From: Epiperipatus broadwayi
Taxonomy: Eukaryota; Animalia; Onychophora
Direction of reading: 5' to 3'
DNA length: 64,000 nucleotides
Assembly (NCBI GenBank): GCA_028023455.1
Contig: JAQFVV010000003.1
Location: 28,830,001-28,894,000, forward strand
Position numbers and translations under genes: made by a program. This document shows positions 3,330 through 35,912 of the stretch, piece after piece (the first letter of the stretch is position 1; every line of letters starts with the position of its first letter). Below the pieces are notes generated by a model. That model did no database searches. It was given only the letters and a program-made list of their open reading frames with translations, and had not been told where the DNA came from.

Positions 3330-5004
3330 AACCAAAAACTAATGTGGTTATTGCTGATTTTTCCCAGTAATTAGCTTATCAATTCTTGGAGATAAATTTG
3401 TGACCATTAAGCACAAAGCTAGATTTATTAATAAACAATTTTTCTTTTGATTTTATGAGTCCATTGCCAAAAATGTTGATTTGTATAAGTATATGATTGA
3501 AAATGGCAATAATACTAAGACCTTTTTGATTGATTCCAGATATTCAGTTTTAATTTTAAACCAAAATTGAGTTATACTTTTCAAATTAAATAATAACTTT
3601 TAAGATACATTGCAACAAGTCTTATTAATTTTTCCTGTTCCAAATCAGTTATATTCTTGTTCAATAAACGGATTTAAATTCCACATATTACCTTTCCATT
3701 TGTCTTTTTCATGTGGATAATATTGATCAAATGCACAATAAAGTTTTTTTAAAAGTCCACCAACACAATTTTTCAATTTGTAGATATTTATATTAGATTC
3801 ATTTATCAATTCTGAAAATGAATGAAACATGTCATGGTTTTTAACTTATTCTCGAATGCCTCAATTTTATTCCATAAATCAAAAGTAGTATGCCTTCCTT
3901 GCAGGCTTAAATTTAATTTATTTATTAATGAAAATATGTCTGACAAGCCAATTTAGCAATCCAATTGTTGTCGTGGAAAATATTTTTCAATTCTGTATTT
4001 TTTGTTTCTGGAAATGTTTCAATTTCTTTTCTTATTTCATAAAATCTTATTCATAGTTTCCCTCTTGACAACCATTGTGCTTCTGCATGAAATAGTAAAT
4101 TTTCATGTCCAGATCCCATTCATTGTATAAACTTGAATTGCATTTAATATTTATTTTTATCAATTAAGAACAATGTTCAAGTCAGGAGACAATTTTTAGC
4201 AGCTAAATGCTTGCAGTGCGTAACCCAATGAGTAAAAATCATTTAGTTATTCTGAATGTTTTTCAGTCATACTTGCCTCTCCATTAGTTCATATGCTAAC
4301 ACAATTTTTCCAATTAAGTTGAATTCTTTTGGATGTAATTATTAATTGCTTTAAATATATCTGAACTAGTTGTGTGATTAGGAAGTTCAATACAACAACA
4401 AAATTCTTTTTACATCATTGATTTCATAGTCAACACAACAAATATAATATAAAAGTATAGCTTTATTGGTAAACTCTGTAGATTCATCTATTTGCGAACA
4501 ATGATTTACTAACTTTTTGAATTAATTGATCTTCAACATCAGTCACTAATTCACTAAATCTGCATTGAATAGTATCATTACAAAGTGGCAAAGTTTTCAT
4601 TTTGTTTCCAGCAACCTCAGGTAAAATTTCAGAATGTCTATTAAACATGGTTTAATTAAGTTTTTGGCAATGGAGTACTGCTTTTTGAATATAGAAATTC
4701 TTAAAGCAAATAAACATGATGCTTTTATAAGAGATTGACTAAAATAAATTTGTTTTTTCAATTCAGTATTTTTATGTTCCAAAAAATTCAGTAGCTTATT
4801 TTGTAGATTTGAATGTTTGGTCTGTAGATGACACATTAATTTTAATGAATTCATGCATTCACTGGATAAAATTTCTCTGCAAATAACACATCGAGGTCTG
4901 GGTAAATTTTCTTCCGACTCAGGCCAAGAAATGAAAACAAATTTTAAATAATCAGGATTGAATTGATGAACAGTACATTTTTCATTTTGTCTGATGCGAA
5001 TCAT
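3330..5004 (-). pseudogene. Disrupted hAT (Buster/ZBED5-like) transposase
   Basis: ORF 4597-5004 contains PRPRCVICREILSSECMNSLKLMCHLQTKH, matching the P.CVIC..LS...KL..HL.TKH motif of Buster-family transposases. Downstream frames are broken (e.g. ORF 3645-3830). The 3' boundary is approximate. Confidence 0.8.
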
Positions 5005-9880: not shown

Positions 9881-11427
9881 TTAATGTCTTATTTTTGTCA
9901 TGTGATCAATGTACTGCATGTGTTTTTCTAACCAATTACACCAAAACAGCCATGATCTTTTGTTTGGATTAGAATCTGAAGCTGTAAAATAGGGATTAAA
10001 ATAATAATTTGGATTAAAACCAAAAAAATAACTGGGATAAAAATAAGGTACATAATATGGTGGATTAAACCATGGTAATGTATTTGGTAAACCATAATTC
10101 CAGTAGTAATTTTCAGAAGGTTGATATCTTATCCGACTATGCTTGCTGTTGGACGACTCATCTGAATCACTTTCTGAACTTGTTTCATTTAATTCTGTGC
10201 TTGTACTTCTATAATCATTTATATTATCTCCTGACATTATATCTTCAACAAATACCTCATTGGAACTATTACAATTTTTATTCATTTCATCTCCATCAGA
10301 AATATCATCTTCTTCACTATTTGATTCTTCATGTGTATAAGTATTATCCTTTTCATTAGGCATTTCATTTTCATTATGATTACTAGTTTTACTGATTTCA
10401 GTGTGTTTTTTTATTAGATCACTAATACCTTCTCTACCACTTATTTCTTCACTTTTGTTTAGTTTTTCTTTATCAGAATTATTTTCCATTTCCTCACAGA
10501 ATTTAATATTCAAAGCTAGAGATAAATCTTTTATTTTCTTTTGTAAATTTTCAGTAACATAAACATCAGACAGACTATCTGATTCTAATTTCTGAACTTT
10601 AAATGGCCATATTTTCTTAATTGCTGTGATTTTCTTTCTTAAATTTATCTCTGGCTCATCAATCGAATTATCTGAAATATCTGCTTCATTGCAATCTTTT
10701 CTTGCAATTTCTTCTTCACTAACTTCATCCATTTCACTAGTTGATTTATAATCATTATTGACTTTTAAAATCTCTCTCTGTAGAATGCAAATCAAAGAAT
10801 TGATAGAGTCATCTGTCATCAGGTTTCCAAAATGCAGAGGTTTTTGAAGCGAATCTTCTTGAAGCTTTGTTTGTGGAAATTTTTTGTATTTCAATAACTC
10901 CTCTTTCAATTCGAAATAACTTGAATATTTTTTTTTATTAAAATTAGGAAATAAAGTAAATGAATGATTATATTGTGAAGAAAGAATTTGAGATTTGTCA
11001 TTCCTATCTGTTATTTTAATAGATGATTTTTGACTTGAGCTTTTGATTTTTTTTTCTGGTGCACCAGATATAGAGTCAAAAATATTACAATCAGCTATTA
11101 AGGGAGAGTTTTTCTGTATTTCTAAGTTATTTTTTATAATATTTTCTTCACAAACTTCCCTACTTAATACACTGCAATCTAAAGATGGACTTGATTTTAT
11201 CTGATCAGTACAATAACAATTAGTATTTGTGATTGGTTTGTGTTCTTCAATATTTTCACTATCAGATTCTGATGAAAGATGTAAGATTACAGATCTATGC
11301 TTTTTCTTTTTCTTCTTTTTTTGCTTGGAACATTGTTTTTGTGATGACAGCCGCCGAATTGTTATGCTATCTGAAAGAATAACAGGTTGACCCTCACAAC
11401 TAAACACCAAATCAGCAGGAATAGGAT
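9881..11427 (-). CDS. DDX20: DDX20/Gemin3 last coding exon (C-terminal low-complexity region)
   Basis: Acceptor tttttacccccttttag|AT at 11428/11427, phase 1. It gives LP-DPIPADL, matching LPDPIP after the DDX20 helicase core. Open frame to the TAA at 9881; the length fits the phase. The ATG at 11509 in the ORF track is intronic. Confidence 0.92.
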
Positions 11428-12109
11428 CTAAAAGGGGGTAAAAAAAGATAATTAAAAAATATGATATGCTAAAAATTAAACATGTATATATTTTTATTAT
11501 CATTATCAAGAGCTATAAAAAAAAATATAAATTTTAATGGACAATCATGGGGTTGGTGGCAATGGGTGCATGACATTTCCTTGCCACTGGTTAGGCCCTG
11601 CACAATTTAGTGCAGTGATATAAGAGATAGACTATAGTACTAAAAGTCCATGGATCACAAATCAGCTACCACTTTCAGTGCTCAAAGATCATGTGATTCC
11701 CCCAATAATAATTTAATTACTTTGCTACTGATCAGCACCATTGTTTAATGGTATTAAAAGGCTCATGGCATAATGTTTAATGCATCTATCTAGCATGCTC
11801 ATTTATTAGAATTTGATTGTCTATTTTTTCAAGATACAAGCAGACTTAGATTTTATTTTAATAAGAAACCAGCCATTATTTATTGAACATTCATTAAATG
11901 TGTATTTAGCTAGAAGATAAAGTTCCAGTTTAATCCAGGTTAGCTAAATGAATGTTGATGCACTGAATATCAAAATAAAAAACACAGTTGTAATATGATG
12001 CAATATTCACCAATAATAAAGAGTCATCATATTCCTAGAAAGGTTGCTGAATGAATGTTTATCTTTATCAATTGGTTTTTTCTTCTTCTTTATATTTACT
12101 ACACTAATA

Positions 12110-12175: not shown

Positions 12176-14837
12176 CAAACTTCTTATAAACTCACAAACA
12201 ATAAAGCCATATGTCTTTTGTTTTTAAACTAGATTGATAATTGTTGGCTATCTACAATGGATTTAATCCTCAAGTCCGAAATTTGAGACGTAAATACATT
12301 CATATATAGAACAATAACAAAATCAATAATAAAATAAATATGCTTCAATATCTCAAATCCTCAATGAATAAATATGTTTCAGTTATTAAAATGAAGTATT
12401 TAAATCTTGGAGATATTAAAATAAATTGTCAGCAAAACCAAATTAATACTGATAATTATTACTCTACTGTCTAGTTATATGCATCTGTTGTTGAGCAAAA
12501 AATTTGACAAACAATGCATGATAGTCTAAGAAATAAAACTTATTGATAATTAAGTGAGCAATCTTATATATAAGTAAGTTCTTTGAAAAATAAAACTTAC
12601 AAATTTTTTTTATATCATGATCTCCATTCCATAGTTACTGAATTCTTAGAATGATAAATGCAAATAGATGAAAATAATAAATAGTTAGTCTGTATCTAGG
12701 TTTCTTTGGATTCTGCTTTGTTATTGTTCACTAACTAACTGTTTCTTATTTGAGTAAAATTCTTATAACAAAGACAAATGTCAACAAATGATTTTGATGA
12801 TAGATCCACTGCAGCTAAACTAATTTGAATTCCATCTCACTTTTATTTTTATGGCCCATAACAACAGTAAATTTAAAAAGTTTGTAAATAGATGGTGTAA
12901 TATTCACCCTAATTACATGAATGGCACCACAAAAATATTGTATTTAATTTTTTATTATTACTATTTTTTACTTTAACTAAAATTTGATAAGCAATGATTA
13001 GAAAATGGAATACTAATGTTTTATCAAATTGGTGCTTCATAACTATATCCCTAAGGATCAAGATGTTTAGAGAATGTGTTACATAAAAAACATTGCTGTG
13101 ATGCTATAATGTGATATGGCTACTCTTTTATTGAAGTCAGGAATCACTCAGCCACTATGTCCAAAAAAACAACAACATGTTAGCCATCTTACTTTCCCTT
13201 TCTACTCATCATCCTATGTTTTCCCTATATTTTTTTCTATCCTGCTCTATTCCATTTCCACATCATCATCATTGTCCACTCCATGGCCTATGTATCTGGA
13301 TGCCCCTTATCTTTTTCCAACCCCAGCATAAAGACCAATAATCCACTTTCTGTATAATTACTTGGTTTATATTTATTCTCCCACAATTTCATTATTTGTA
13401 CCCTTTCTGGTTCTAAGGATTTACATTCTATTATAAAATGCCTAATATTTTCCATGCCTTTATATATAATCTGCAGACTAAACCACCCACATTTCTCCAT
13501 TTATATGTATATTCCCTTGTTGCTAGCGATCCTGTTCGAGGCCTGAATAGTAAACTACTTTCCCTACTATTATTATAAATTAACTCACATTGTTTACTTC
13601 TATATATATTTAAGCTCTTTTTACTCTCCATACTAGTTCTCCATCTCTCCAGCTCCCTATTTTTTATTAATACATCTATTCTTTTATCCCAGACTTCGCC
13701 ACTATAACACTCAACAATCCTCCTAACACAATCATCCCACACTTTGTACAAGTATATTGATATAGTCTTTATCCAAACCTTCTGCATACCATACTATCTT
13801 TACCCAATTTTGTTGCTGGCCCTTAATTAATAATTTAATTAAATACTATTTTGATTATTCTCTTACTATCCATAAATTGCAATCTACCAAATATTTTCAT
13901 TTTGCATCTCCTTGAATTGCTTCCTTTGCTGTCCACACATCTACATCTAATACATATCTTCTTCTCTTTGTACTTTTTCTAAGTAACATCCCTTTGCTAA
14001 CACATAACACATCATTCCCATAGGTTAACCCTGCTATTGCCACTTCCTTCCATACAATTCTTGCTGTATCATATTTATTTTATGAAAACACTTAATTTCT
14101 TAATCGGTCCTTTTTTTCTTCTTTGCTTCATTTATCAATTTTTTCCCCTATTCCTCTGATTACTTAAGACAATTCTCAAATAGTTGTACCTATTCACCAC
14201 ACTTTACTTTATATCCCCCAAGAAAAATTGTTTCTCTTCCCTTTTCCTAGCATTTACCATCATTACTTTTGATTTTTCTTCACTAAATTTGATCCCCCAT
14301 CTTTTTACATATCCCTGCACAAGTCTTCAGCACAACTTACATATTTTCCCTACTTTCTGTACATAAGAAAATATCATCAGCAAATAAAAGATTTGATAAT
14401 GTATACTTTCCCTTGCTATCTATTAATGGTATCTCTATTCCTCATCCTAATCTTTCTATTGCCCTTTCCATTTCTCTCAAATATAACAAAAACAAAATAG
14501 GTGACATAAGGCATCTTTGCTTTAGTCCCACTTCATTTTTAACTCTAACTGATTCTACATTTCCTAATTGATACATATAATAATTATTTTCATACAATCT
14601 CTTAATAAGATCCACTAAGGCCCCATTCATTCCCAAATTTACTAAAACTTACTCATAATCTACTTCTATTCATTCTATCATATGCCTTTCTCGATATCTA
14701 TAAAGACCATGGTCTACCTGTATTTCTACTCATTTCTATAAGTTGTGTTACTACAAATAAAGTATCCCCTATATGCCTATCCTAAAGCCTCCCATGATCA
14801 CCATTTCTTATGCTTGCTCATAACTGTTATTAAATTA

Positions 14838-14986
14838 GGTAAAACTCTCCATACAATAGTGCCACTCAGTGCAAGCCAGAGTAATCAATGGATGCCAGAA
14901 GACTTGTGCATAAAATCCCTATCTAGTGCCTACTTATCCAATATCCCCAGATTAGTGAGTGGCACTACTGTATGGAGAGTTTTGCC
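14838..14986 (-). mobile_element. 149-bp insertion with ~30-bp inverted ends; short member of the hammerhead-bearing repeat family
   Basis: GGTAAAACTCTCCATACAATAGTGCCACTCA ... TGAGTGGCACTACTGTATGGAGAGTTTTGCC. The body is homologous to 36194-36290 and 36455-36532, and it interrupts the LINE RT. Confidence 0.75.
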
Positions 14987-15601
14987 TGTTTTATTCTAAA
15001 ACCTCCTTGCATTTCTCCCACTATATTATTTTCTTCCATTCATTTGCCACCCTTCAACTCAACATATATGCAAAAACTTTATACAACACCAACTACTACC
15101 AGTCTATGATCTTTACCCTTTCCTTTAAATCATAGCCTCACTCTTGTATTATTCCAGCTATCTGGGAATTCTGTCTTCTGTGTCACCTTATTAAAGCATG
15201 ATAATAGATTTAATTTTGCTCTATTCCCCAAATTTATCATCATGCTTCCCATCCATCTAAACCACTTGCCTTCCCATTTTTCAATTTCTTCCCTGCCTCA
15301 TTCATTTTCTGTAAAACTAATATTTCCATTATTATGTGCTTTTATGATGGTTATTCTGTCCTTCACATCTAACATTTTTCTATATCCATTACATACTTAT
15401 TTAAGATTGATTCTAATTCTTCTCTAGAACTATACTCTTTCTCCTTATCATTTAGTAATACTACTTCTCTTTCCCCTATATTCTTTCTTTTAATATATTT
15501 CCAAAATTTTTTACTCCCATCTTTTCCATTTTTATTAATATCTTCCAATAATTTACAATTTAATTTCATTCTTTATGTTTTCCTGAAGATGATAGTGTTT
15601 T

Positions 15602-17676: not shown

Positions 17677-19781
17677 TGTAACGATATATAAATATGTCGT
17701 TACATTAAATTGAAATAAAAACTTTTAAGTTCGCAAATAAAAATAAATGTATTAGAAAAAAAAAAACTAAACACTAAAATTAAAATGTTTGTTAAACATA
17801 TAACTTATATATTATATTCGCACAGATGCAAAACTTTAAAAAATTTTTTTTATAAATAAAAAAAGTATTTGAACGTACTTTTTTGATAAAAAAAAAAAAA
17901 AGATTTAAATATAGAAATATTTTAATAAAGAAATAACGTAAGTTAAAATAAAAACAGGTATTAATTAATTCCTGTAATCTGTAAATGGAAATGATTGTTT
18001 ATTAATTATCCAAAAGCTGTGTAATTAAAGGGTCAGATGAAAAGTTAGCTAAGAGAATAAAGAGAAATTAGCTTGACCAATGAAATCACCAAGCCTCAGC
18101 CCGGATCCGAATGAAAAGGATCGATTAGTGACGTTTTGTTGGTTGAATCTGTGTGGATACTATAAAAGGAGAAATACAGTTTTCCTGAGAGTTTTTCCAG
18201 CTTGTTTTTGAGGGTCGTGATAGGACGCACATATCGCACTCTCTCTCTATTTTAAAAATGAACTGACTGTGATACCAAAATGAACCAGCTAATGCTACCT
18301 CCGGAACATCTGACCGGGTTTTCAAATAAAGACTCCGTGAAAATTTACATCAAGAGCAGTGATTCTTCTACTGTAAACTATTGACATGAACTCTAAGTTT
18401 AAAAATAATTAAGAACTTTCGTTCAAGCTTATGAACTTCTATCTGACTTTTAAGTTTAAAATGAATTGAAAATGTTTAAATTTATATGTTTTGCATTGAT
18501 AAACATCATTTCCATTTTATTATTTTTTTTATTTGTATTAATACTTATCGTATAAATTATTTAAATGCATGAAATTTAAAGTTGGGTATAGACGTTGCAT
18601 AGATTCGTTAGCGGTTAATTGTTGCTGTTTCATGGTCGATTGCAATATATAAGTCATCATGTCACTGCGGTGTCTTATGATGAACACCATTGGGTTTTTT
18701 TTTTATATTCCCTAGGTAATTGACATTATCAATGACTTTGTATTTTGATCGGTTATGTTTATTTTGGAATGTTTTTGACCGTGGAATCTGTGCAGTCGAT
18801 CTATACTCAACATTTTAAAACAAATTTTATAAAATTCATCTGTGCGAACATAATAAATGTTAAATTTAAGTCGGGCGTGAATGGCTGTATAGATTTGTAA
18901 AGTTATATATAGTTTAAGGGAGGGTAATCTTAGGTTATTCGTTTCGTAGTTGAATTAGCTCAATGGATTGGATATATTTGTGTAATTAGTAGATGTATGC
19001 GATCCGCTACGGGCAGGATTGCATATATACGCCACACACCTTCCGTTTGCCTATAGATGGGTTTGTAAGACGGCAAAGGACCGCAATCCATTCCTATGGA
19101 GTTTTATGTTTATTGTTATACTCGCCAACAGATGTAGCATTCCTGTTGGTGGAGAGACAATGTCTTCTGTAACTCTACTTACTGTTCAGATGTACATTCC
19201 TGACAGTATAGTATTTTGTGTTGTCGTATTTTCATGCTACATTGAATACATAAATACATCAGATGGATTGACGCCGGTTTGACTGCGAACTTTTTGGCCT
19301 AAGGCTAAATAAGGGATAGAATATTTTCTTTTCAAATGCAGATCTATGTAGTCTATTCATACTTGACAATCTTAAAATAAATATAAATTCATCTGTAGAT
19401 GATTTAAAATTTTAAAATAATAAGTTAAATTAACAGAATATTAAAATCTAAAAAAACAATTAATGTTGTTCCTCAAAATTTAAAAATGATTCAAAATTAT
19501 ATATGTGCGTAAATAAATATTTTTATGTGTTAATTTCTGGCAGTAGCTTTTATTTATTTATATTTAAGATATAAATTAAGATATAGATTATTATCTCTGC
19601 GTCTCCACTGAGCTAGTGACTTGGGCTAACAATCTAAATATTAAATAAAGTGGAATCTTATCAGCGCGTATCTGCCTACTTTATAAATTTTTCTAGGCTT
19701 AAATGCCTAGATGGCGCTCTGTAGAGCAGATATCGTAGTTTGCGGTTAGATTCGATCTTCACTTGTGTTTGGATCGTTATA
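17677..19781 (+). repeat. ~2.1-kb LTR (subfamily 1 of the long-LTR family)
   Basis: Starts TGTAAC and ends GATCGTTATA. Blocks such as agggagggtaatcttaggttattcg...gtaattagtagatgta match the reverse complement of 50860-50950. Confidence 0.88.
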
Positions 19782-19783
19782 AC

Positions 19784-19803
19784 TGGCGCCCAAATCGTGG
19801 GGC
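19784..19803 (+). promoter_or_regulatory. Primer-binding site, tRNA-Lys(CUU) type
   Basis: TGGCGCCCAA[AT]CGTGGGGC equals the known Lys1,2 PBS TGGCGCCCAACGTGGGGC with a 2-nt insertion, 2 nt after the LTR end. Confidence 0.85.
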
Positions 19804-20076
19804 CGGTAATTTATTTCCACCCCTGAGGGGATTAATGAGTATAGAGATAAAATTCTTTGTGCAAAATTAATGATTTTAAATTAAATTTTCGTTGTCCAAA
19901 ATAATGTCTATGTATAGATTTTTTTTCATGCGTTTGGACGCCCATCGCTTGGGACTTTGTTAATTATTCCCACACCCTGCAATACCCTGTATAGTATTTA
20001 AGTATATAGTGTTGTGTTTTTTTTCTTTTCTAAATAACACTAAAAGAAAAATATGTATATATATGTAAGATTTTTT

Positions 20077-23000
20077 GGTCCTGGTTTGCAGACCGTACTG
20101 CCGCCGTCAGAGGGCGCGGCGACATCATCAACAACCGGCCTGAAAATGGCAAGTGATAAATTTTTTTACAAAACGCCTCAAAATCGACAAATAAAAATGC
20201 CTAAGGCAATATATGTACAGCAAATAAAGCGAAAACTACAAATTAAAAAAAAATGAAAGAAAATGCTAAAAAATTCAAATAATAAAACCAAAAAATCATG
20301 AAAATTCCATTACGAGCTATACCCCCCCCCAAAATAAAAAAAACGCCTCAAAATCGACAAATAAAAATGCCTAAGGCAATATATGTACAGCAAATAAATC
20401 GAAAACTACAAATTAAAAAAAAATGCAAGAAAATGCTAAAAAATTCAAATAATAAAAACAAAAAATCATGAAAATTCCTTTACGAGCTATACCCCCCTCA
20501 AATCAAAATGCCTTCCCTTAAATCGACAAATAAAAATGCCTCAGACAATATATGTACAGCAAATAAATCGAAAACAACAAATTATAAAAAAAATGCAAGA
20601 AAATGCTAAAAAATTCAAATAATAAAACCAAAAAACCATGAAGATTCTATCAAGAGATATACCTCCCTCTACAATCTGACAATTCACAAAACGTGGCGGC
20701 CAAATAAAGCGGGAAAATACGAAAAAAAATCAAATTATTTACCTTCAACATAAATATGCATCTAAGTTCATATTAAAAAGCAATTCCCCCAACTGGTCAA
20801 AACGTAACACAGATTAATACGTAGTAACTAATAAAAAAATAAGCAGAAAATGCTATAAAATGCAAACTATAAAAAAATAGGATTAACAGTCCCCCCCCCC
20901 TACAATCTGGACATTCAGAAGGAAGCATGGTGGCCAAAAATAGCAGGGATCAAATTATTTACCTTAAACATAAATATGCATCTAAATTGATATTGAAAAG
21001 CAATTAATTGTTCTCTGACTTTCAAATTACTGCATATGTAAATGGAGCAGTAATATTTAAATAATCAAAAAGCAATCATTACCGATCCCTCCCCACTAAT
21101 CAAAACGTAATAAATGGTATCAATATTTTAAGATGATTTAAGTAACAGACCTAATAAGAATTCATATCATAGATTAATACGTAGTAAGTAATTAAATAGA
21201 ATTATAGTAAGTTTAAAAGAGAAGATGGAAAAATTACCTTGTTGCATTTTTTTTTGTTCAAGAAATTGTTTTTCACTGTTATATAGATTTAAATCACAGA
21301 TTGTAGTTTCAAAATGACTATCCCCTTCCCCCATTTAGTGACTTTTCTAAAACTAAGAACTCATAACACAGATTAATACGTACTAAGTGATTAAATATGG
21401 CAACAACGGACTAACTTTTATAAAATGTACTAAATCTTATGAATATTTAAAAAATCAAACACTATTTGCACATGTGTTGTGCATTATTTAAGTAATAGAT
21501 ATAACTCCTCAACACAGATTAATACCGTACATAGTAAGAAAGTTTAAAAAAGAAAGTGGGAAAAATTACCTTGTTCCAAATTCGGTTCAGAGCCATTTGC
21601 ACAATGATGACTCGATCATGATGTTCTGCAAAATGTAGCTTTGCTGGTAAATTTCTTAACACTTTTAGCAATGATGATTTCAGCAGATTAAAAAAATTAT
21701 TTAACAGAAGGTATCTACAAACACTAGCATTTATTTAAATCAAGTTATGCACACATATATAATATCCCAATTCATTTTAAAAATAATAAACAATTGTCCA
21801 CTATATTCATATTATTTTCAATTATGTTTTTATTTAAACAAAGTTGCAAGTTCATCTACATTTTTTTAATGAGAGATGTGTAATTACAAACATGAAATCT
21901 CCCCCCCCCCCCCTTTACTTGACAGCAAAAAATACTGTAAATACTTTTAAAAGAAAAGTCTTTCAACATCAAATTATTTATCTTTAAAGCAATTAATTGT
22001 TATCTGGCTCTCAAATTATGACATATGTAAATTGATCAATAATATTCAAATAATAATCAATGTAAAAAAGGAATACAAAACATAATTACCAAAGTCTTTC
22101 GGAACAGATTTTAACACTACGACTAAGAGCAAATATGGCAGAAATTAGCGGGAAAAAAAAGTTTTGAGTTAAAATTTGCGCATATCTAATGTTGTACTCT
22201 TCTCCATCAAAAAATAATCCTAATTAAGTTTGTCAAAAAATAAACATTATCCCAACAACTTGTATTTCTAGCACTACAAAATAATTAAAACGTCATAATA
22301 GAACTAAGCAGGTATTTCAAAACTCTACTTTAGCTACATTTCAAGTAAATTTGTTAGCTTTGGAAATAATATTTTTGATGTAAAATCTCTATTACGTCAT
22401 ATTTCATTTCACAGTTTGTTCTTTCAAAATTAAAATGCATACTATAAAAGAAGGATGACCGGAAATTATTTTTGGGTATCATGACTTAATAGAGATTTTA
22501 CATCAAAAATATCATTTCCAAAGCTAACAAATTTACTTAAAATGTAGCTAAAGTAGAGTTTTGAAATACCTGCTTAGTTCTATTATGACGTTTTAATTAT
22601 TTTGTAGTGCTAGAAATACAAGTTGTTGGGATAATGTTTATTTTTTGACAAACTTAATTAGGATTATTTTTTGATGGAGAAGAATACAACATTAGATATG
22701 CGCAAATTTTAACTCAAAACTTTTTTTTCCCGCTAATTTCTGCCATATTTGCTCTTAGTCGTAGTGTTAAAATCTGTTCCGAAAGACTTTGGTAATTATG
22801 TTTTGTATTCCTTTTTTACATTGATTATTATTTAAATATTATTGATCAATTTACATATATCATAATTTGAGAGCCAGATAACAATTAATTGCTTTAAAGA
22901 TAAATAATTTGATGTTGAAAGACTTTTCTTTTAAAAGTATTTACAGTATTTTTTGCTGTCAAGTAAAGGGGGGGGGAGAGAAGATTTCATGTTTGTAATT

Positions 23001-24808
23001 ACACATCTCTCATTAAAAAAATGTAGATGAACTTGCAACTTTGTTTAAATAAAAACATAATTGAAAATAATATGAATATAGTGGACAATTGTTTATTATT
23101 TTTAAAATGAATTGGGATATTATATATGTGTGCATAACTTGATTTAAATAATTGCTAGTGTTTGTAGATACCTTCTGTTAAATAATTTTTTTAATCTGCT
23201 GAAATCATCATTGCTAAAAGTGTTAAGAAATTTACCAGCAAAGCTACATTTTGCAGAACATCATGATCGAGTCATCATTGTGCAAATGGCTCTGAACCGA
23301 ATTTGGAACAAGGCAATTTTTCCCACTTTCTTTTTTAAACTTTCTTACTATGTACTGTATTAATCTGTGTTGAGGAGTTATATCTATTACTTAAATGCAC
23401 AGCACATGTGCAAATAGTGTTTGATTTTTTAAATATTTATAAGATTTAGTACATTTTATAAAAGTTAGTCCGTTATTGCCATATTTAATCACTTAGTACG
23501 TATTAATCTGTGTTATGAGTTCTTATTTTTAGAAAAGTCACTAAATGGGGGAAGGAGATAGTCATTTTGAAACTACAATCTGTGATTTAAATCTATATAA
23601 CAGTGAAAAACAATTTCTTGAACAAAAAAAAATGCAACAAGGTAATTTTTCCATCTTCTCTTTTAAACTTACTATAATTCTATTTAATTACTTACTACGT
23701 ATTAATCTATGATATGAATTCTTATTAGGTCTATTACTTAAATAATCTTAAAATATTGATACCATTTATTATGTTTTGATTAGTGGGGAGGGGTCGGTAA
23801 TGATTGCTTTTTGATTATTTAAATATTACTGCTCCATTTACATATGCAGTAATTTGAAAGCCAGAGAACAATTAATTGCTTTTCAATATCAATTTAGATG
23901 CATATTTATGTTTAAGGTAAATAATTTGATCCTCGCTATTTTTGGCCGCCATGCTTCCTTCTGAATGTCCAGATTGTAGGGGGGGGGACTGTTGATCCTA
24001 TTTTTTTATAGTTGGCATTTTATAGCATTTTCTGCTTATTTTTTTATTAGTTACTACATATTAATCTGTGTTATGTTTTGACCAGTTGGGGGAATTGCTT
24101 TTTAATATGAACTTAGATGCATATTTATGTTGAAGGTAAATGATTTGATTTTTTTCGTATTTTCCCGCTTTTTTTGGCCGCCATGTTTTGTGAATTGTCA
24201 GATTGTAGAGGGAGGTATATCTCTTGATAGAATCTTCATGGTTTTTTGGTTTTATTATTTGAATTTTTTAGCATTTTCTTGCATTTTTTTTATAATTTGT
24301 TGTTTTCGATTTATTTGCTGTACATATATTGTCAGGCATTTTTATTTGTCGATTTAAGGGAAGACATTTTGATTTGGTGGGGGGGTATAGCTCGTAATGG
24401 AATTTTCATGATTTTTTGTTTTTATTATTTGAATTTTTTAGCATTTTCTTGCATTTTTTTTTAATTTGTAGTTTTCGCTTTATTTGCTGTAACATATATT
24501 GCCTTAGGCATTTTTATTTGTCGATTTTGAGGCGTTTTTTTTGATTTTTTTTTGGGGGGGGGGGGTATAGCTCGTAATGGAATTTTCATGATTTTTTGTT
24601 TTTATTATTTGAATTTTTTAGCATTTTCTTTCATTTTTTTTTAATTTGTAGTTTTCGCTTTATTTGCTACATATATTGCCTTAGGCATTTTTATTTGTCG
24701 ATTTTGAGGCATTTTGTAAAAAAAATTATCACTTGCCATTTTCAGGCCGGTTGTTGATGATGTCGCCGCGCCCTCTGACGGCGGCAGTACGGTCCGCAAA
24801 CCACGACC
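20077..24808. mobile_element. 4.73-kb foldback-type non-autonomous DNA transposon (near-complete palindrome)
   Basis: Arms 20077-22400 and 22481-24808 are reverse complements (about 97% in sampled stretches), with an 80-bp spacer. Termini GGTC(C/G)TGGTTTGC..; perfect 8-bp TSD GATTTTTT (20069-20076 / 24809-24816). Confidence 0.92.
20170..20680 (+). repeat. Three ~170-bp subterminal tandem repeats in the left foldback arm (mirrored at ~24210-24720)
   Basis: aatcgacaaataaaaatgcc recurs at 20182, 20352 and 20521. Confidence 0.92.
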
Positions 24809-24870
24809 GATTTTTTTTTCCGGGTTTGTTTCTCTTGACCTATCGCAAAAAAATATTTGTAATTCATGTA

Positions 24871-25150
24871 GAGTATTTTTTTTCTGAATATAATATAATA
24901 ATAAAAAAGGAGTAAATTAGTATAAATCAGGAGACATGTCAATCAATTAATTTCATGCACTGAATAGGTCATTATATATATATGTGTGCAAATGCATAGT
25001 CAAAAAAGAGTATTTTTTTTCTGGATATAATATAATAATAAAAAAGGAGTAAATTAGTAAATAAATCAGGAGACACGTCAATCAATTAATTTCATGCACT
25101 GAATAGGTCATTATATATATATATATATGCAAATGCATAGTAAAAAAAAA
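24871..25150 (+). repeat. ~137-bp tandem duplication
   Basis: gagtattttttt..ctg(a/g)atataatataataataaaaaaggagtaaattag..atcaggagaca(t/c)gtcaatc..gcaaatgcatagt starts at 24871 and 25008. Confidence 0.9.
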
Positions 25151-25621
25151 ATAAGTTTTTTATTAAATATTTTATAAATTTTATGTAATCTTTCCTGCTT
25201 ACTGGTGACTGGCGCTCGAGGATGATTTGAACAAGCTATAAGTCATCCTCATATAAATTTGTCATCAGAGGTGGAGAAGGAAACGTTCTACGCTTAAAAT
25301 AAAAAGGGGACCCATTTGATTTGTTTTTTTTTTTTTAAAAAAAAAGTAGAATTGGATTTGATGAAAATGAGAATGGAATAAAGTATAGGGTCAAATCAAA
25401 AGTTTGAGGTTTGAAACTGGCACAGACGTGTAAAATGAATTATGTTATAATCATGAACAACTGAAGTCTATTTTAAAAGCAACTGGAAGAAGAAACCGAT
25501 GGTGAGTTACCTTTATTGATTTAGTTATTTTAGTAAATTTTAATCATTTGTTAAATATTTTGTAGTCAGATTTTAAAGATGGGCAAATCTTAGCGAATTT
25601 AAATAAAATATAGCGGTATCA
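25065..25621 (+). repeat. Right arm of the 557-bp long-range inverted repeat
   Basis: Reverse complement of 16574-17130. Confidence 0.95.
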
Positions 25622-25791
25622 TTTATAGGCATCTTTAATAGAGTTAGCCATAGGAACAGGATGGAAAGTGGACAGGTCGTTTTCGTTTGCGGAGTACAGC
25701 TATTTGCCGTATTATAAAAAGTCAAGTCAAAGTAAATTAATTTAGCTCTGTAAAAATATATTGGATAAATAAAATAGAATAAACTAGTAAT

Positions 25792-27250: not shown

Positions 27251-27884
27251 CATAAGTAATTGTTGCTGGTAGATGTGTATGTAAATATATAAATCCTCTA
27301 TTGGAAGATAGAGTAACTAAAGATGAAACTCTCTCCTATAAAGACAAATTTAGACATTTTAGTAATGGCATTAACACCCCTCAATAATGCGCTAAAACAA
27401 ATGCTCAACATTCTTCAATTTTCTCTGTGCATTCTTGTTTAAAGGAAATTAATGTCTTATAAGTGGAATAATTTGTATTAATTCTTCCTTGTTCATGGTT
27501 TATGTAAGTTTAGAAATAGACATTAACCCTGTGATTCTGAACTTACAGTTCCCGTGCATTCATGGACAACTAGTTAGAAACTAAATTCATTTTTCAAAAG
27601 TTAACAAAAAGTAATGTATCAACTAAATCAGAACATATAACACTTGTCCAATAAAAAGGAAAATGATAATAATGATGATGAATGATTTACTGCTCAAGAG
27701 ATCATGTGATTTAGTGCACAAGAATTGAACTTCAATTTAAAAATCTTTAATTCAAGTCCTTAATTCTTTCACTGCATTAAACATGAAAAAAAAAAAAAGA
27801 AATGACATATTTGAAATAGTATAAACACTTTAGATTTTAAATAATAAAGTTTATTGAACATTCAAAATCATTATAAAACTGTAC

Positions 27885-27986
27885 CTGGTAATTGACACAG
27901 CTTGAGTCTGCAATGGTCTTGAATATTCAGTAAATTTTCGTACTCTGTCTTATGACTTGCAAGAGTTATAGCCACACCATGAGAAC
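27885..27986 (-). CDS. DDX20: DDX20 internal exon (102 bp, phase 1-1)
   Basis: tttctttatag|GT TCT CAT...TTA CCA G|gtacag; encodes (G)SHGVAITLASHKTEYENLLNIQDHCRLKLCQLP, following motif VI. Confidence 0.92.
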
Positions 27987-28839
27987 CTATAAAGAAATAA
28001 ATTACTATATTTCAAAAAATAAGTAGTGATTTTCCACAACAAAACTACCACATGACTCTCCTAGCTTGATGTGTCCATATAACAGTAACATTCGTTCCAA
28101 CATAACTTGCAGAATAGTAACAATACAAAAAGTGTACTTTTTAATAAGAAAGGCAAGTAAATTGAAAATAATTTCTTATGTTTTGGTACAGACATCTGAT
28201 ATGCCTGGTTATTTATGATATATTTCAGATAAGTTTGAATATTACTTATATTAAGCAGATTTTACTTGCTTTATTTTAAAGTTTGAAAAAATAAAATATA
28301 CATAATTATAAAATGGGATATTCTTTATAGTCAATAAGCACACATTTAATTATATTATGGATAGGGAGAAATTATAATCAATTAAAGAATGTTTCATTTA
28401 TTTTATGAAATTTACAATTATTAACTTTTCCTTATACTCAATCAAGTAAGAATTTAATTTTCATTTTCATATAAATACGATCAACTGAATTTAGCACACA
28501 AAATATATAATTAATATACTACAAAACTATAACTTATAAAACTATTATGAATGAGGGTATTTAAGCACTCTCATGTTTTATTTTAAAATGAGCTAATAGA
28601 GAGTGCTTAAGTAATTCCATAAATAATACATACATACATACACCCATATATATATATCAGATTATAATATAATAATATACTATAATATAGCAACAGATTA
28701 CATAATGATAGTAAAAATATTAACATTGAGAAGGATGTATGACAAGATAATTCCATATCTAAAAAACGTTTTTGTGGGTTAAAATAGCAAGCAAAGTAAA
28801 TAGAAGTAAATGGAGATTATTTAAGGCATGTAGATTTTG

Positions 28840-29480
28840 AAGGATTATGTAGTTGTTTTTGCAAATAATGCTTTAGAACTTCAGGAAATGTTGCAAGAGT
28901 TATCAGATGACAGTAAGAAAGTAGGATTAAAAATAAATGTTAAAAAGACTAAAGTAATGTTCAATGGATTTTTCTCAAAAAAAGAAAATAAAGATTAATA
29001 ATGATGAGTTAGAAGAAGTTAACAATTACAAATACTTTCATCAGATTATTACTATAGATGGACACATAATGGATGATATTAATCATAGGATTAAATTTGG
29101 TTGGAGTGCTTTTGGTAGAAATAACAATATGTGTCTGAAAAGGAAGTTAAAGGTGTGTTAACACTTTTCACTTACAGATCTGACAATTGGGTACTTAACA
29201 GAAGAATAGTACAAAGACTTTAGACTACTCAATGAAGTATGGAGAAATGCATATTAGGAGTAACAAGAAGAGATTGAAAACGAAATATCTGGGTGAGAAA
29301 ACAAAGAGGTATTACTGATAGCATTGAAAGAATTAAGAGACTGAATATATTTCTAGAAGAGACAACAATTAATGGATAATTGAAATCTTAAACTAGATTC
29401 CAAGAGATTGTAAAAGAACTAGAAAAAGCTAACATGTAAGAAACTCAGACAAAATAAGGAAGTGTGCTGGGTGATGTAGA
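28840..29480 (+). mobile_element. RTE-clade LINE 3' RT fragment
   Basis: FANNALELQEMLQELSDDSKKVGLKINVKKTKVMFN and ELEEVNNYKY..INHRIKFGWSAFG (ORF 28964-29161). Confidence 0.85.

Positions 29481-35645: not shown

Positions 35646-35912
<267 letters not shown>

Follow-up and report, generated by a model that had tools for sequence, protein, structure and literature searches.

Feschotte is said to have described the Merlin superfamily of DNA transposons in 2004. Merlin is related to bacterial IS1016/IS1595, and its defining features are GG termini, a TSD of 8-9 bp and a DDE_Tnp_IS1595 domain (PMC8101967). It has been described as having no N-terminal Zn_Tnp_IS1595 domain, and its reported TIR lengths of 24-462 bp are descriptive, not defining (PMC8101967). 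Foldback architectures are known from other lineages. Galileo, with Kepler and Newton, represents foldback-like elements of the P superfamily in Drosophila; it was first labelled Foldback-like, and its superfamily was settled by the discovery of a transposase-bearing copy (PMC3573991). Drosophila FB, Tm1 of root-knot nematodes (PMC3169594) and Tetris of D. virilis (PMC4079207) are also foldback elements with tandem repeats in their arms, are mostly non-coding, and have a MULE-like transposase lineage. A literature search for a foldback Merlin found none.

We analysed a window of 64,000 nucleotides from the onychophoran Epiperipatus broadwayi and searched the genome of this animal (5.6 Gb, 28% GC) for related sequences. 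The window contains a palindrome of 4,732 bp (20077-24808). This palindrome is very probably a non-autonomous foldback member of the Merlin superfamily that was cut and pasted into an older repeat within an intron of DDX20. The element is notable mainly because Merlin was not previously known to have kilobase-long inverted arms; otherwise, it is a well-behaved mobile element.

An inverted-repeat scan and self-BLAST delimit the palindrome, and bear out the original prediction of a near-perfect palindrome of ~4.73 kb with ~2.3-kb arms and an 80-bp spacer. The left arm (2,324 bp; 20077-22400, plus strand) is mirrored by the right arm (2,328 bp; 22481-24808, minus strand). Between them lies an unpaired loop of 80 nt (22401-22480), which the autonomous copy and other foldback copies share. 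Element positions 1-2324 pair with positions 4732-2405 at 97.3% identity over 2,337 aligned columns, with 42 substitutions and 30 gap columns between the arms. Most of the substitutions are transitions (29, versus 13 transversions), as had been predicted. Folding of the central 1 kb predicts a single hairpin (-731 kcal/mol, z = -77).

The ends of the element are GGTC...GACC. Its left end is GGTCCTGGTTTGCAGACCGTACTGCC, and its right end, when reverse-complemented, is GGTCGTGGTTTGCGGACCGTACTGCC; the two begin GGTCCTGG... and GGTCGTGG..., with the 5'-GG of Merlin TIRs. The left terminal 93 bp (20077-20169, plus strand), beginning GGTCCTGG, have 53% GC inside an element of 28% GC, and the right terminal 93 bp (24716-24808, minus strand), finishing ...CCACGACC, have 54%. 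Subterminal tandem arrays adjoin these ends, with 2.9 copies of a 170-bp unit on the left (20170-20667, plus strand) and 2.9 copies of a 180-bp unit on the right (24210-24715, minus strand). The element is flanked by a perfect 8-bp duplication, GATTTTTT on both sides (20069-20076 and 24809-24816); the chance of a random 8-mer match at the local base composition is ~7e-5. The GGTC termini, the perfect 8-bp TSD and the subterminal repeats all agree with the original prediction, as does its description of a foldback transposon without a recognisable ORF: the longest ORF inside the element is only 76 aa.

The original prediction left the superfamily between Merlin-like and Mutator/Foldback-like, and suggested looking for an autonomous transposase relative. 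We found such a relative, a 5,710-bp copy (L032) that has the same termini as the window element, arms ~97% identical to it and its own perfect 8-bp TSD, GATCATTT. The arms of L032 pair without interruption over 1,184 bp. It contains an intact ORF of 311 aa, or 288 aa when counted from an ATG, that matches PF12762 (65.8 bits, cut-off 27) and NF033547 of NCBIfam (107 bits, cut-off 75). The predicted catalytic residues D159, D220 and E259 align with those of a second Merlin transposase of the same genome. A Pfam scan (E <= 0.01) yielded only PF12762 and a sub-threshold Diedel match, and did not detect an N-terminal Zn_Tnp_IS1595 domain. A short-TIR Merlin family of this genome, with GG ends and an 8-bp TSD, has a transposase that shares 56% identity with the ORF. 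Because L032 is an autonomous copy whose TIRs are those of the window element and whose transposase is an IS1595/Merlin DDE enzyme, the superfamily is resolved as Merlin, and the Mutator/Foldback half of the original suggestion is not supported.

Accordingly, the family resembles Merlin in its 5'-GG termini, its 8-bp TSD, its single transposase of ~300 aa with a DDE_Tnp_IS1595 domain and no Zn_Tnp_IS1595 Pfam match, and the spacing of ~60 residues from the first catalytic Asp to the second. Unlike Merlin TIRs, its arms lie far outside the range of 24-462 bp: those of the autonomous copy measure at least 1.2 kb, and those of non-autonomous copies 2.1-2.3 kb. A further difference from known Merlin elements is that the non-autonomous copies are palindromic save for the 80-nt loop.

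In L032, the transposase cassette lies inside one arm, 225 bp from the loop, and breaks up an otherwise foldback structure on that side. This arrangement could fit an element of another or unknown superfamily, such as hAT, in which the Merlin gene of L032-type copies is a nested insertion or capture that later spread. Moreover, hAT transposons likewise make 8-bp TSDs, and L032 is the sole autonomous copy read end to end; elsewhere, the link between cassette and terminus consists of coordinates. However, the cassette junctions show no TIR of their own, no GG...CC ends and no TSD. The cassette has identical junctions in at least 40 scored copies, five of which adjoin inner-arm matches, and at least 16 cassette copies, at 94% or higher amino acid identity, have no stop codon. 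Transposase-bearing copies other than L032 lie, for example, on C14 (~14.069-14.075 Mb), C2125, C12546, C240 and C84. Identical junctions and intact ORFs are expected of the family's own autonomous form. The GG termini and 8-bp TSD of the element also match those of Merlin in general and of another Merlin family here. The hAT terminal consensus is YARNG, which the GGTC termini do not fit, and Pfam finds no hAT domain in the L032 transposase. We therefore consider a captured gene to be quite improbable. Given L032 and the at least 40 copies that have its cassette at identical junctions, at least 16 of them with open frames, we interpret the window element as a non-autonomous Merlin derivative that is mobilised in trans.

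Elements of the FB and MULE type typically have a TSD of 9 bp. A Mutator/Foldback element comparable to Drosophila FB or nematode Tm1, and moved by a MULE-type transposase, would resemble the window element in its long, internally repetitive inverted arms and GG termini (PMC3169594). By contrast, the TSD is 8 bp in seven copies of the present family, and the only transposase found between these termini is of the IS1595/Merlin type, with no MULE domain in Pfam. The family is like FB, Tm1 and Tetris in its foldback structure, arm repeats and mostly non-coding copies, but differs from them in transposase lineage and TSD length. We regard an origin from the Mutator/Foldback superfamily as highly improbable.

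The Merlin family described here is also like Galileo in several ways. In both, the majority of copies are nothing but long TIRs with internal repeats, a tandem repeat within the TIR (~200 bp in Galileo) is present in differing copy numbers, the flanks of some copies do not match, and a transposase-bearing copy settled the superfamily (PMC3573991). The two differ in the transposase (P-type in Galileo, IS1595/Merlin in the present family), in the TSD (7 versus 8 bp) and in the length of the TIRs or arms (0.3-1.2 kb versus up to 2.3 kb). Neither the 7-bp TSD nor the P/THAP9-type transposase of the P superfamily is seen in this family.

The family is abundant in the genome. Searches with the 93-bp terminus gave 1,281 first-look candidates, with 40 scored copies at 98-100% identity, and searches with the inner arm gave 1,236. 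The terminal 93 bp are the most conserved stretch of the family and are presumed to be the end recognised by the transposase. Arms of other copies are 95-98% identical to the window arm, the copy number of the subterminal tandem array differs among family members, and all family termini read, except two, start with GGTC. Shorter derivatives form a size series from 230 to 1,334 bp. Perfect 8-bp TSDs flank 6 of 10 complete copies (the window copy, L032, L034, L036, L017 and L013), so the further copies with shared termini and 8-bp TSDs anticipated in the original prediction exist, five of them with perfect duplications. The flanks of L037 match at 7 of 8 TSD bases, and those of the remaining three (L031, L033 and L018) do not match.

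Several other candidates for autonomous copies were rejected. On C12500, the pair of termini L035/L038, which spans 12.6 kb, is a family copy with a Gypsy-type LTR retroelement inside it. L039 and L040 match only in the terminal 92 bp and have no transposase within 10 kb inward; we classify them as solo ends. The 30 best Merlin DDE matches (L041-L070) represent one unrelated short-TIR family, and none of them has a GGTC terminus or similarity to the element.

The window element interrupts an older, interspersed host repeat, whose left half (19800-20068) has 1,223 first-look candidates in the genome. The right half (24817-25700) is joined directly to the left half in paralogues. Three paralogous copies of this repeat (L072-L074) are uninterrupted and have one GATTTTTT each at the same point, and so represent empty sites. 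When the flanks were used to look for an allelic or polymorphic empty site, all matches were paralogous copies of the repeat, and a second haplotype was not found.

Long reads are well known to yield false near-perfect palindromes with a short centre, when a foldback chimera, caused for example by a missed hairpin adapter, creates a palindrome that is absent from the genome. Such a chimera does not account for the substitutions and gap columns that separate the arms, for precise TIR termini with an 8-bp TSD and an empty site in paralogues, or for palindromes on other contigs that share the same 80-nt loop, which foldback copies L031 and L033 have in common with the window copy. The artefact explanation is effectively refuted, and we assign it a next to negligible probability. 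In view of the empty paralogous sites and of the 8-bp TSDs around many other copies, the palindrome reflects a real transposition event, as the original prediction had argued against a chimeric read. It is a fairly young transposon insertion. A foldback derived from a retroelement, such as one of the Penelope or retrozyme type, is scarcely conceivable given the 8-bp TSD, the symmetric arms with defined TIR termini, the DDE transposase partner and an Rfam scan of the element that found no hammerhead or other family at E <= 1.

The transposase of the autonomous copy would act in trans on window-type Merlin elements, binding their ends and probably also the subterminal 170-bp repeats. The element would then be excised and inserted via an 8-bp staggered cut. 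Where the autonomous form has the cassette, the foldback form has a mirrored duplicate of the opposite arm. The foldback form may have been born when repair of a gap or break used the element's own other arm as a template, and may then have been amplified as a palindrome. For the two diagnostic variants adjacent to the loop, the autonomous copy and L031 are a/b, the window copy is a/a and L033 is b/b. From such sequence variants, we infer that arm-to-arm conversion is probably still ongoing.

The predicted location inside a DDX20 intron is upheld by homology-based exon mapping, which places minus-strand exons to the left and right of the element. With DDX20 homologues from molluscs, the intron is mapped as ~16 kb long. 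In tblastn searches with molluscan and other DDX20 homologues, there were 28 collinear matches without composition correction. The exon transcribed directly before the element (27877-27990, minus strand) corresponds to approximately amino acids 365-402 of the homologues, and is matched by four of them with composition correction (E 0.002-0.013). An exon encoding helicase motifs V and VI (ARGID...) is located by homology at 35790-35900 (minus strand). Downstream of the element is a large open frame (9881-11509, minus strand; 542 aa from the first start codon) that is single-copy in the genome. Its collinearity with the C-termini of DDX20 homologues is seen only without composition correction; with the correction, the match is not significant. 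We read it as the terminal DDX20 exon because of its length, single-copy status and collinearity.

For DDX20, the practical point is small: one of its introns holds a sequence able to form a 2.3-kb hairpin. If transcribed as part of DDX20, the element could form dsRNA that is a potential substrate of ADAR or Dicer. In a broader scenario, a Merlin lineage that is still active has reshaped itself into perfect palindromes on the kilobase scale, and a genome of 5.6 Gb tolerates many of them, some within essential genes. Ongoing gene conversion within elements would keep the arms identical, and the dsRNA stems of 2.3 kb formed by intronic copies would enter ADAR editing or small-RNA pathways. We consider this scenario speculative and rather unlikely. 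If it is true, the foldback Merlin family would both mark an unusual tolerance of palindromes and regulate host transcripts.

The window element and its relatives extend the Merlin superfamily to a foldback architecture, with arms approximately five times as long as the longest Merlin TIRs on record. They repeat the lesson of Galileo in a third superfamily, namely that "Foldback-like" denotes a structure and not a lineage. Since autonomous, foldback and miniature forms occur together, with many intact transposase genes, the family is a usable system for studying how long palindromes originate, how the two arms become homogenised and in what way a genome tolerates such structures.

The 4,732-bp element at window 20077-24808 is, as originally predicted, a near-perfect palindrome. 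An inverted-repeat scan and self-BLAST pair 20077-22400 with 24808-22481 (97.3% over 2,337 columns), and leave an unpaired 80-nt spacer at 22401-22480. The differences between the arms are mostly transitions (29, versus 13 transversions, with 30 gap columns), and most of these sites show a change private to one arm relative to the other family copies, with ~20 such changes per arm (<1%). The element starts with GGTCCTGGTTTGCAGACCGTACTGCC, and its opposite end is the same 26-mer apart from two differences. Each arm has a GC-rich 93-bp end (53-54% GC, in a 5.6-Gb assembly of 18,588 contigs with ~28% GC), followed inward by 2.9 tandem copies of a 170-180-bp unit. The element contains no ORF longer than 76 aa, in line with the predicted lack of a recognizable one, and an Rfam scan of it matched no family. 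The central kilobase, folded computationally as RNA, is predicted to form one hairpin (-731 kcal/mol, z = -77).

The octamer GATTTTTT occurs on both flanks as a perfect 8-bp target site duplication (TSD), for which the probability of a chance match given this base composition is ~7e-5. Both flanks are parts of an older interspersed repeat. In all three paralogues of this host repeat that were read (L072-L074), ...AAGATTTTTT runs straight into CCGGGTTTG... with a single copy of the octamer, the arrangement of an empty site. Genome-wide, first-look candidates number at least 1,281 for the 93-bp terminus and at least 1,236 for the inner arm; 40 scored candidates for the terminus have 98-100% identity. 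Perfect 8-bp TSDs, differing in sequence, flank five of ten complete copies read (L032, L034, L036, L017 and L013), and a sixth, L037, matches at 7/8 bases. The palindromic design and the 80-nt loop recur in L031 (4,374 bp) and L033 (4,305 bp), so the palindrome is a property of the family and not one assembly event. Both ends are also kept in shorter derivatives of 230 to 1,334 bp. Given the empty sites, the other copies with their own TSDs and the additional palindromes, the window element is a real transposition, as the original prediction had argued, and not a chimeric read.

Other features of the family vary. L031 (G000:C6241:8333712-8338085), L033 (G000:C6260:5829313-5833617) and L018 are complete copies whose flanking octamers are unmatched. 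Across copies, the fifth base of the terminus is either C or G (GGTCC or GGTCG), and the two ends disagree at this position in 6/10 complete copies. Solo termini of 92-99 bp occur at G000:C96:~1475333 and G000:C12:~13000232; they end exactly where the 170-bp repeats would start, and are followed by unrelated sequence. Another family copy, on contig C12500, contains a Gypsy-type LTR retroelement with protease and RT/RNase H ORFs (L035:7396-9899, L038:2-1719).

The superfamily had been left between Merlin-like and Mutator/Foldback-like, and the Merlin part of this proposal is borne out by an autonomous copy. In a genome search for Merlin transposases with the PF12762 profile, the 30 top-scoring loci all come from a single, unrelated Merlin family that has short terminal inverted repeats (TIRs), GG ends and an 8-bp TSD (e.g., L042, GGTACTTACGG..., TSD GTTTTTTC). 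The coordinates of inner-arm matches show that, in several foldback-family copies, one inner arm is interrupted at an identical position; contig C14 has a Merlin DDE match ~500 bp from this position. The copy L032 (5,710 bp, TSD GATCATTT) has the same termini as the window element and arms ~97% identical to it, and holds a 311-aa ORF in a unique 1.5-kb segment, the cassette. This ORF reaches 65.8 bits against PF12762, whose cut-off is 27, and 107 bits against the NCBIfam model for IS1595 family transposases, NF033547, whose cut-off is 75. The short-TIR family's transposase has 56% identity to it, and the catalytic residues D159, D220 and E259 are conserved between the two. An independent nested insertion is very unlikely as the source of the cassette, since its junctions in L032 have neither inverted ends nor a duplication of their own. 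The junctions are identical in at least 40 scored copies, and a stop-free frame is kept in at least 16 cassette copies at ≥94% amino acid identity. Merlin elements are recognized by GG termini, a TSD of 8 or 9 bp and a transposase with a DDE_Tnp_IS1595 domain (PMC8101967); the foldback family has all of these features, its TSD being 8 bp. Within this Merlin family, the window element is a non-autonomous copy.

Merlin transposases are extremely abundant genome-wide: PF12762 has at least 5,573 first-look candidates and the L032 protein at least 29,595. These transposases represent several families, whose open frames span 318 to 386 aa, and many are intact. One-strand clusters of copies occur on single contigs at G000:C12538:2.71-3.06 Mb, where copies, some of them intact, have 70-77% identity to L032, and at G000:C7823:2312-21375, where the ~4.5-kb spacing resembles a tandem array.

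As predicted, the window element appears to lie inside an intron of DDX20, based on homology-mapped exons on either side. The exon at window:57622-57765:- was used as a query for full-length homologues, the best being those of the molluscs Sinanodonta woodiana, Pecten maximus and Mytilus, and tblastn of these against the window gave collinear minus-strand exons at 57765-57622, 49204-49064, 42291-42136 and 35900-35790. The exon at 27990-27877 (minus) directly follows in homologue numbering; it has 28 matches without composition correction and, with correction, E-values of 0.002-0.013 for four homologues. A 542-aa open frame at 11509-9881 (minus), single-copy in the genome, aligns with the C-terminal ends of homologues only with composition correction off. 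Its length, uniqueness and collinearity suggest a putative terminal exon. On this mapping, the element would be in a ~16-kb intron from 27877 to ~11.5 kb, and might affect DDX20 transcripts via dsRNA, ADAR or Dicer. Short ORFs resembling reverse transcriptase/LINE fragments occur in the same intron (13288-15569, minus) and at 28837-29161 (plus). The repeat at 19269-19780 is highly abundant, with at least 6,769 first-look candidates, and forms head-to-head pairs 1-3 bp apart on two contigs (C15052:3910-4394 with 4397-4832; C8319:21262-21747 with 21749-22182).

In the orientation fetched, L032 consists of a complete 2,338-bp arm, the 80-nt loop, 225 bp of the other arm, the transposase cassette, a 55-bp tandem array and the outer part (~1.45 kb) of the second arm. 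In place of the cassette, the window element has a mirror copy of ~650 bp of the opposite arm. We infer that a break or gap in a cassette form may have been repaired with the element's own other arm as template, yielding a foldback form that was then amplified. The reverse order, from foldback to cassette form, is conceivable. Individual copies differ beside the loop, where two variants, a and b, are distinguished by ~14 diagnostic sites in a stretch of about 60 bp. The two arms are of different type (a/b) in L032 and L031, and of one type in the window copy (a/a) and in L033 (b/b). In most other copies, identity to the left inner arm of the window element is 94-98% for one arm and 89-93% for the other. 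These patterns point to arm-to-arm conversion in individual copies, which would make arm identity a poor clock for insertion age.

The closest parallel is Galileo, which was first filed as Foldback-like since most copies are long TIRs only, and was reassigned to the P superfamily once a transposase copy was found (PMC3573991). Its TIRs have ~210-bp tandem repeats in varying number, proposed to contain secondary binding sites, and chimeric copies with dissimilar flanks also occur; copies with unmatched flanks are attributed to ectopic recombination among Galileo elements (PMC3573991). The foldback family shows the same pattern, but within Merlin. An L032-type transposase would bind the 93-bp ends and 170-bp repeats, and would mobilize the window element in trans. 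Described Merlin TIRs are 24-462 bp (PMC8101967), in contrast to the kilobase arms here, and no foldback or kilobase-TIR Merlin was found in the literature searched. We therefore rate the foldback, kilobase-arm architecture of this family as a new form within the otherwise known Merlin superfamily.
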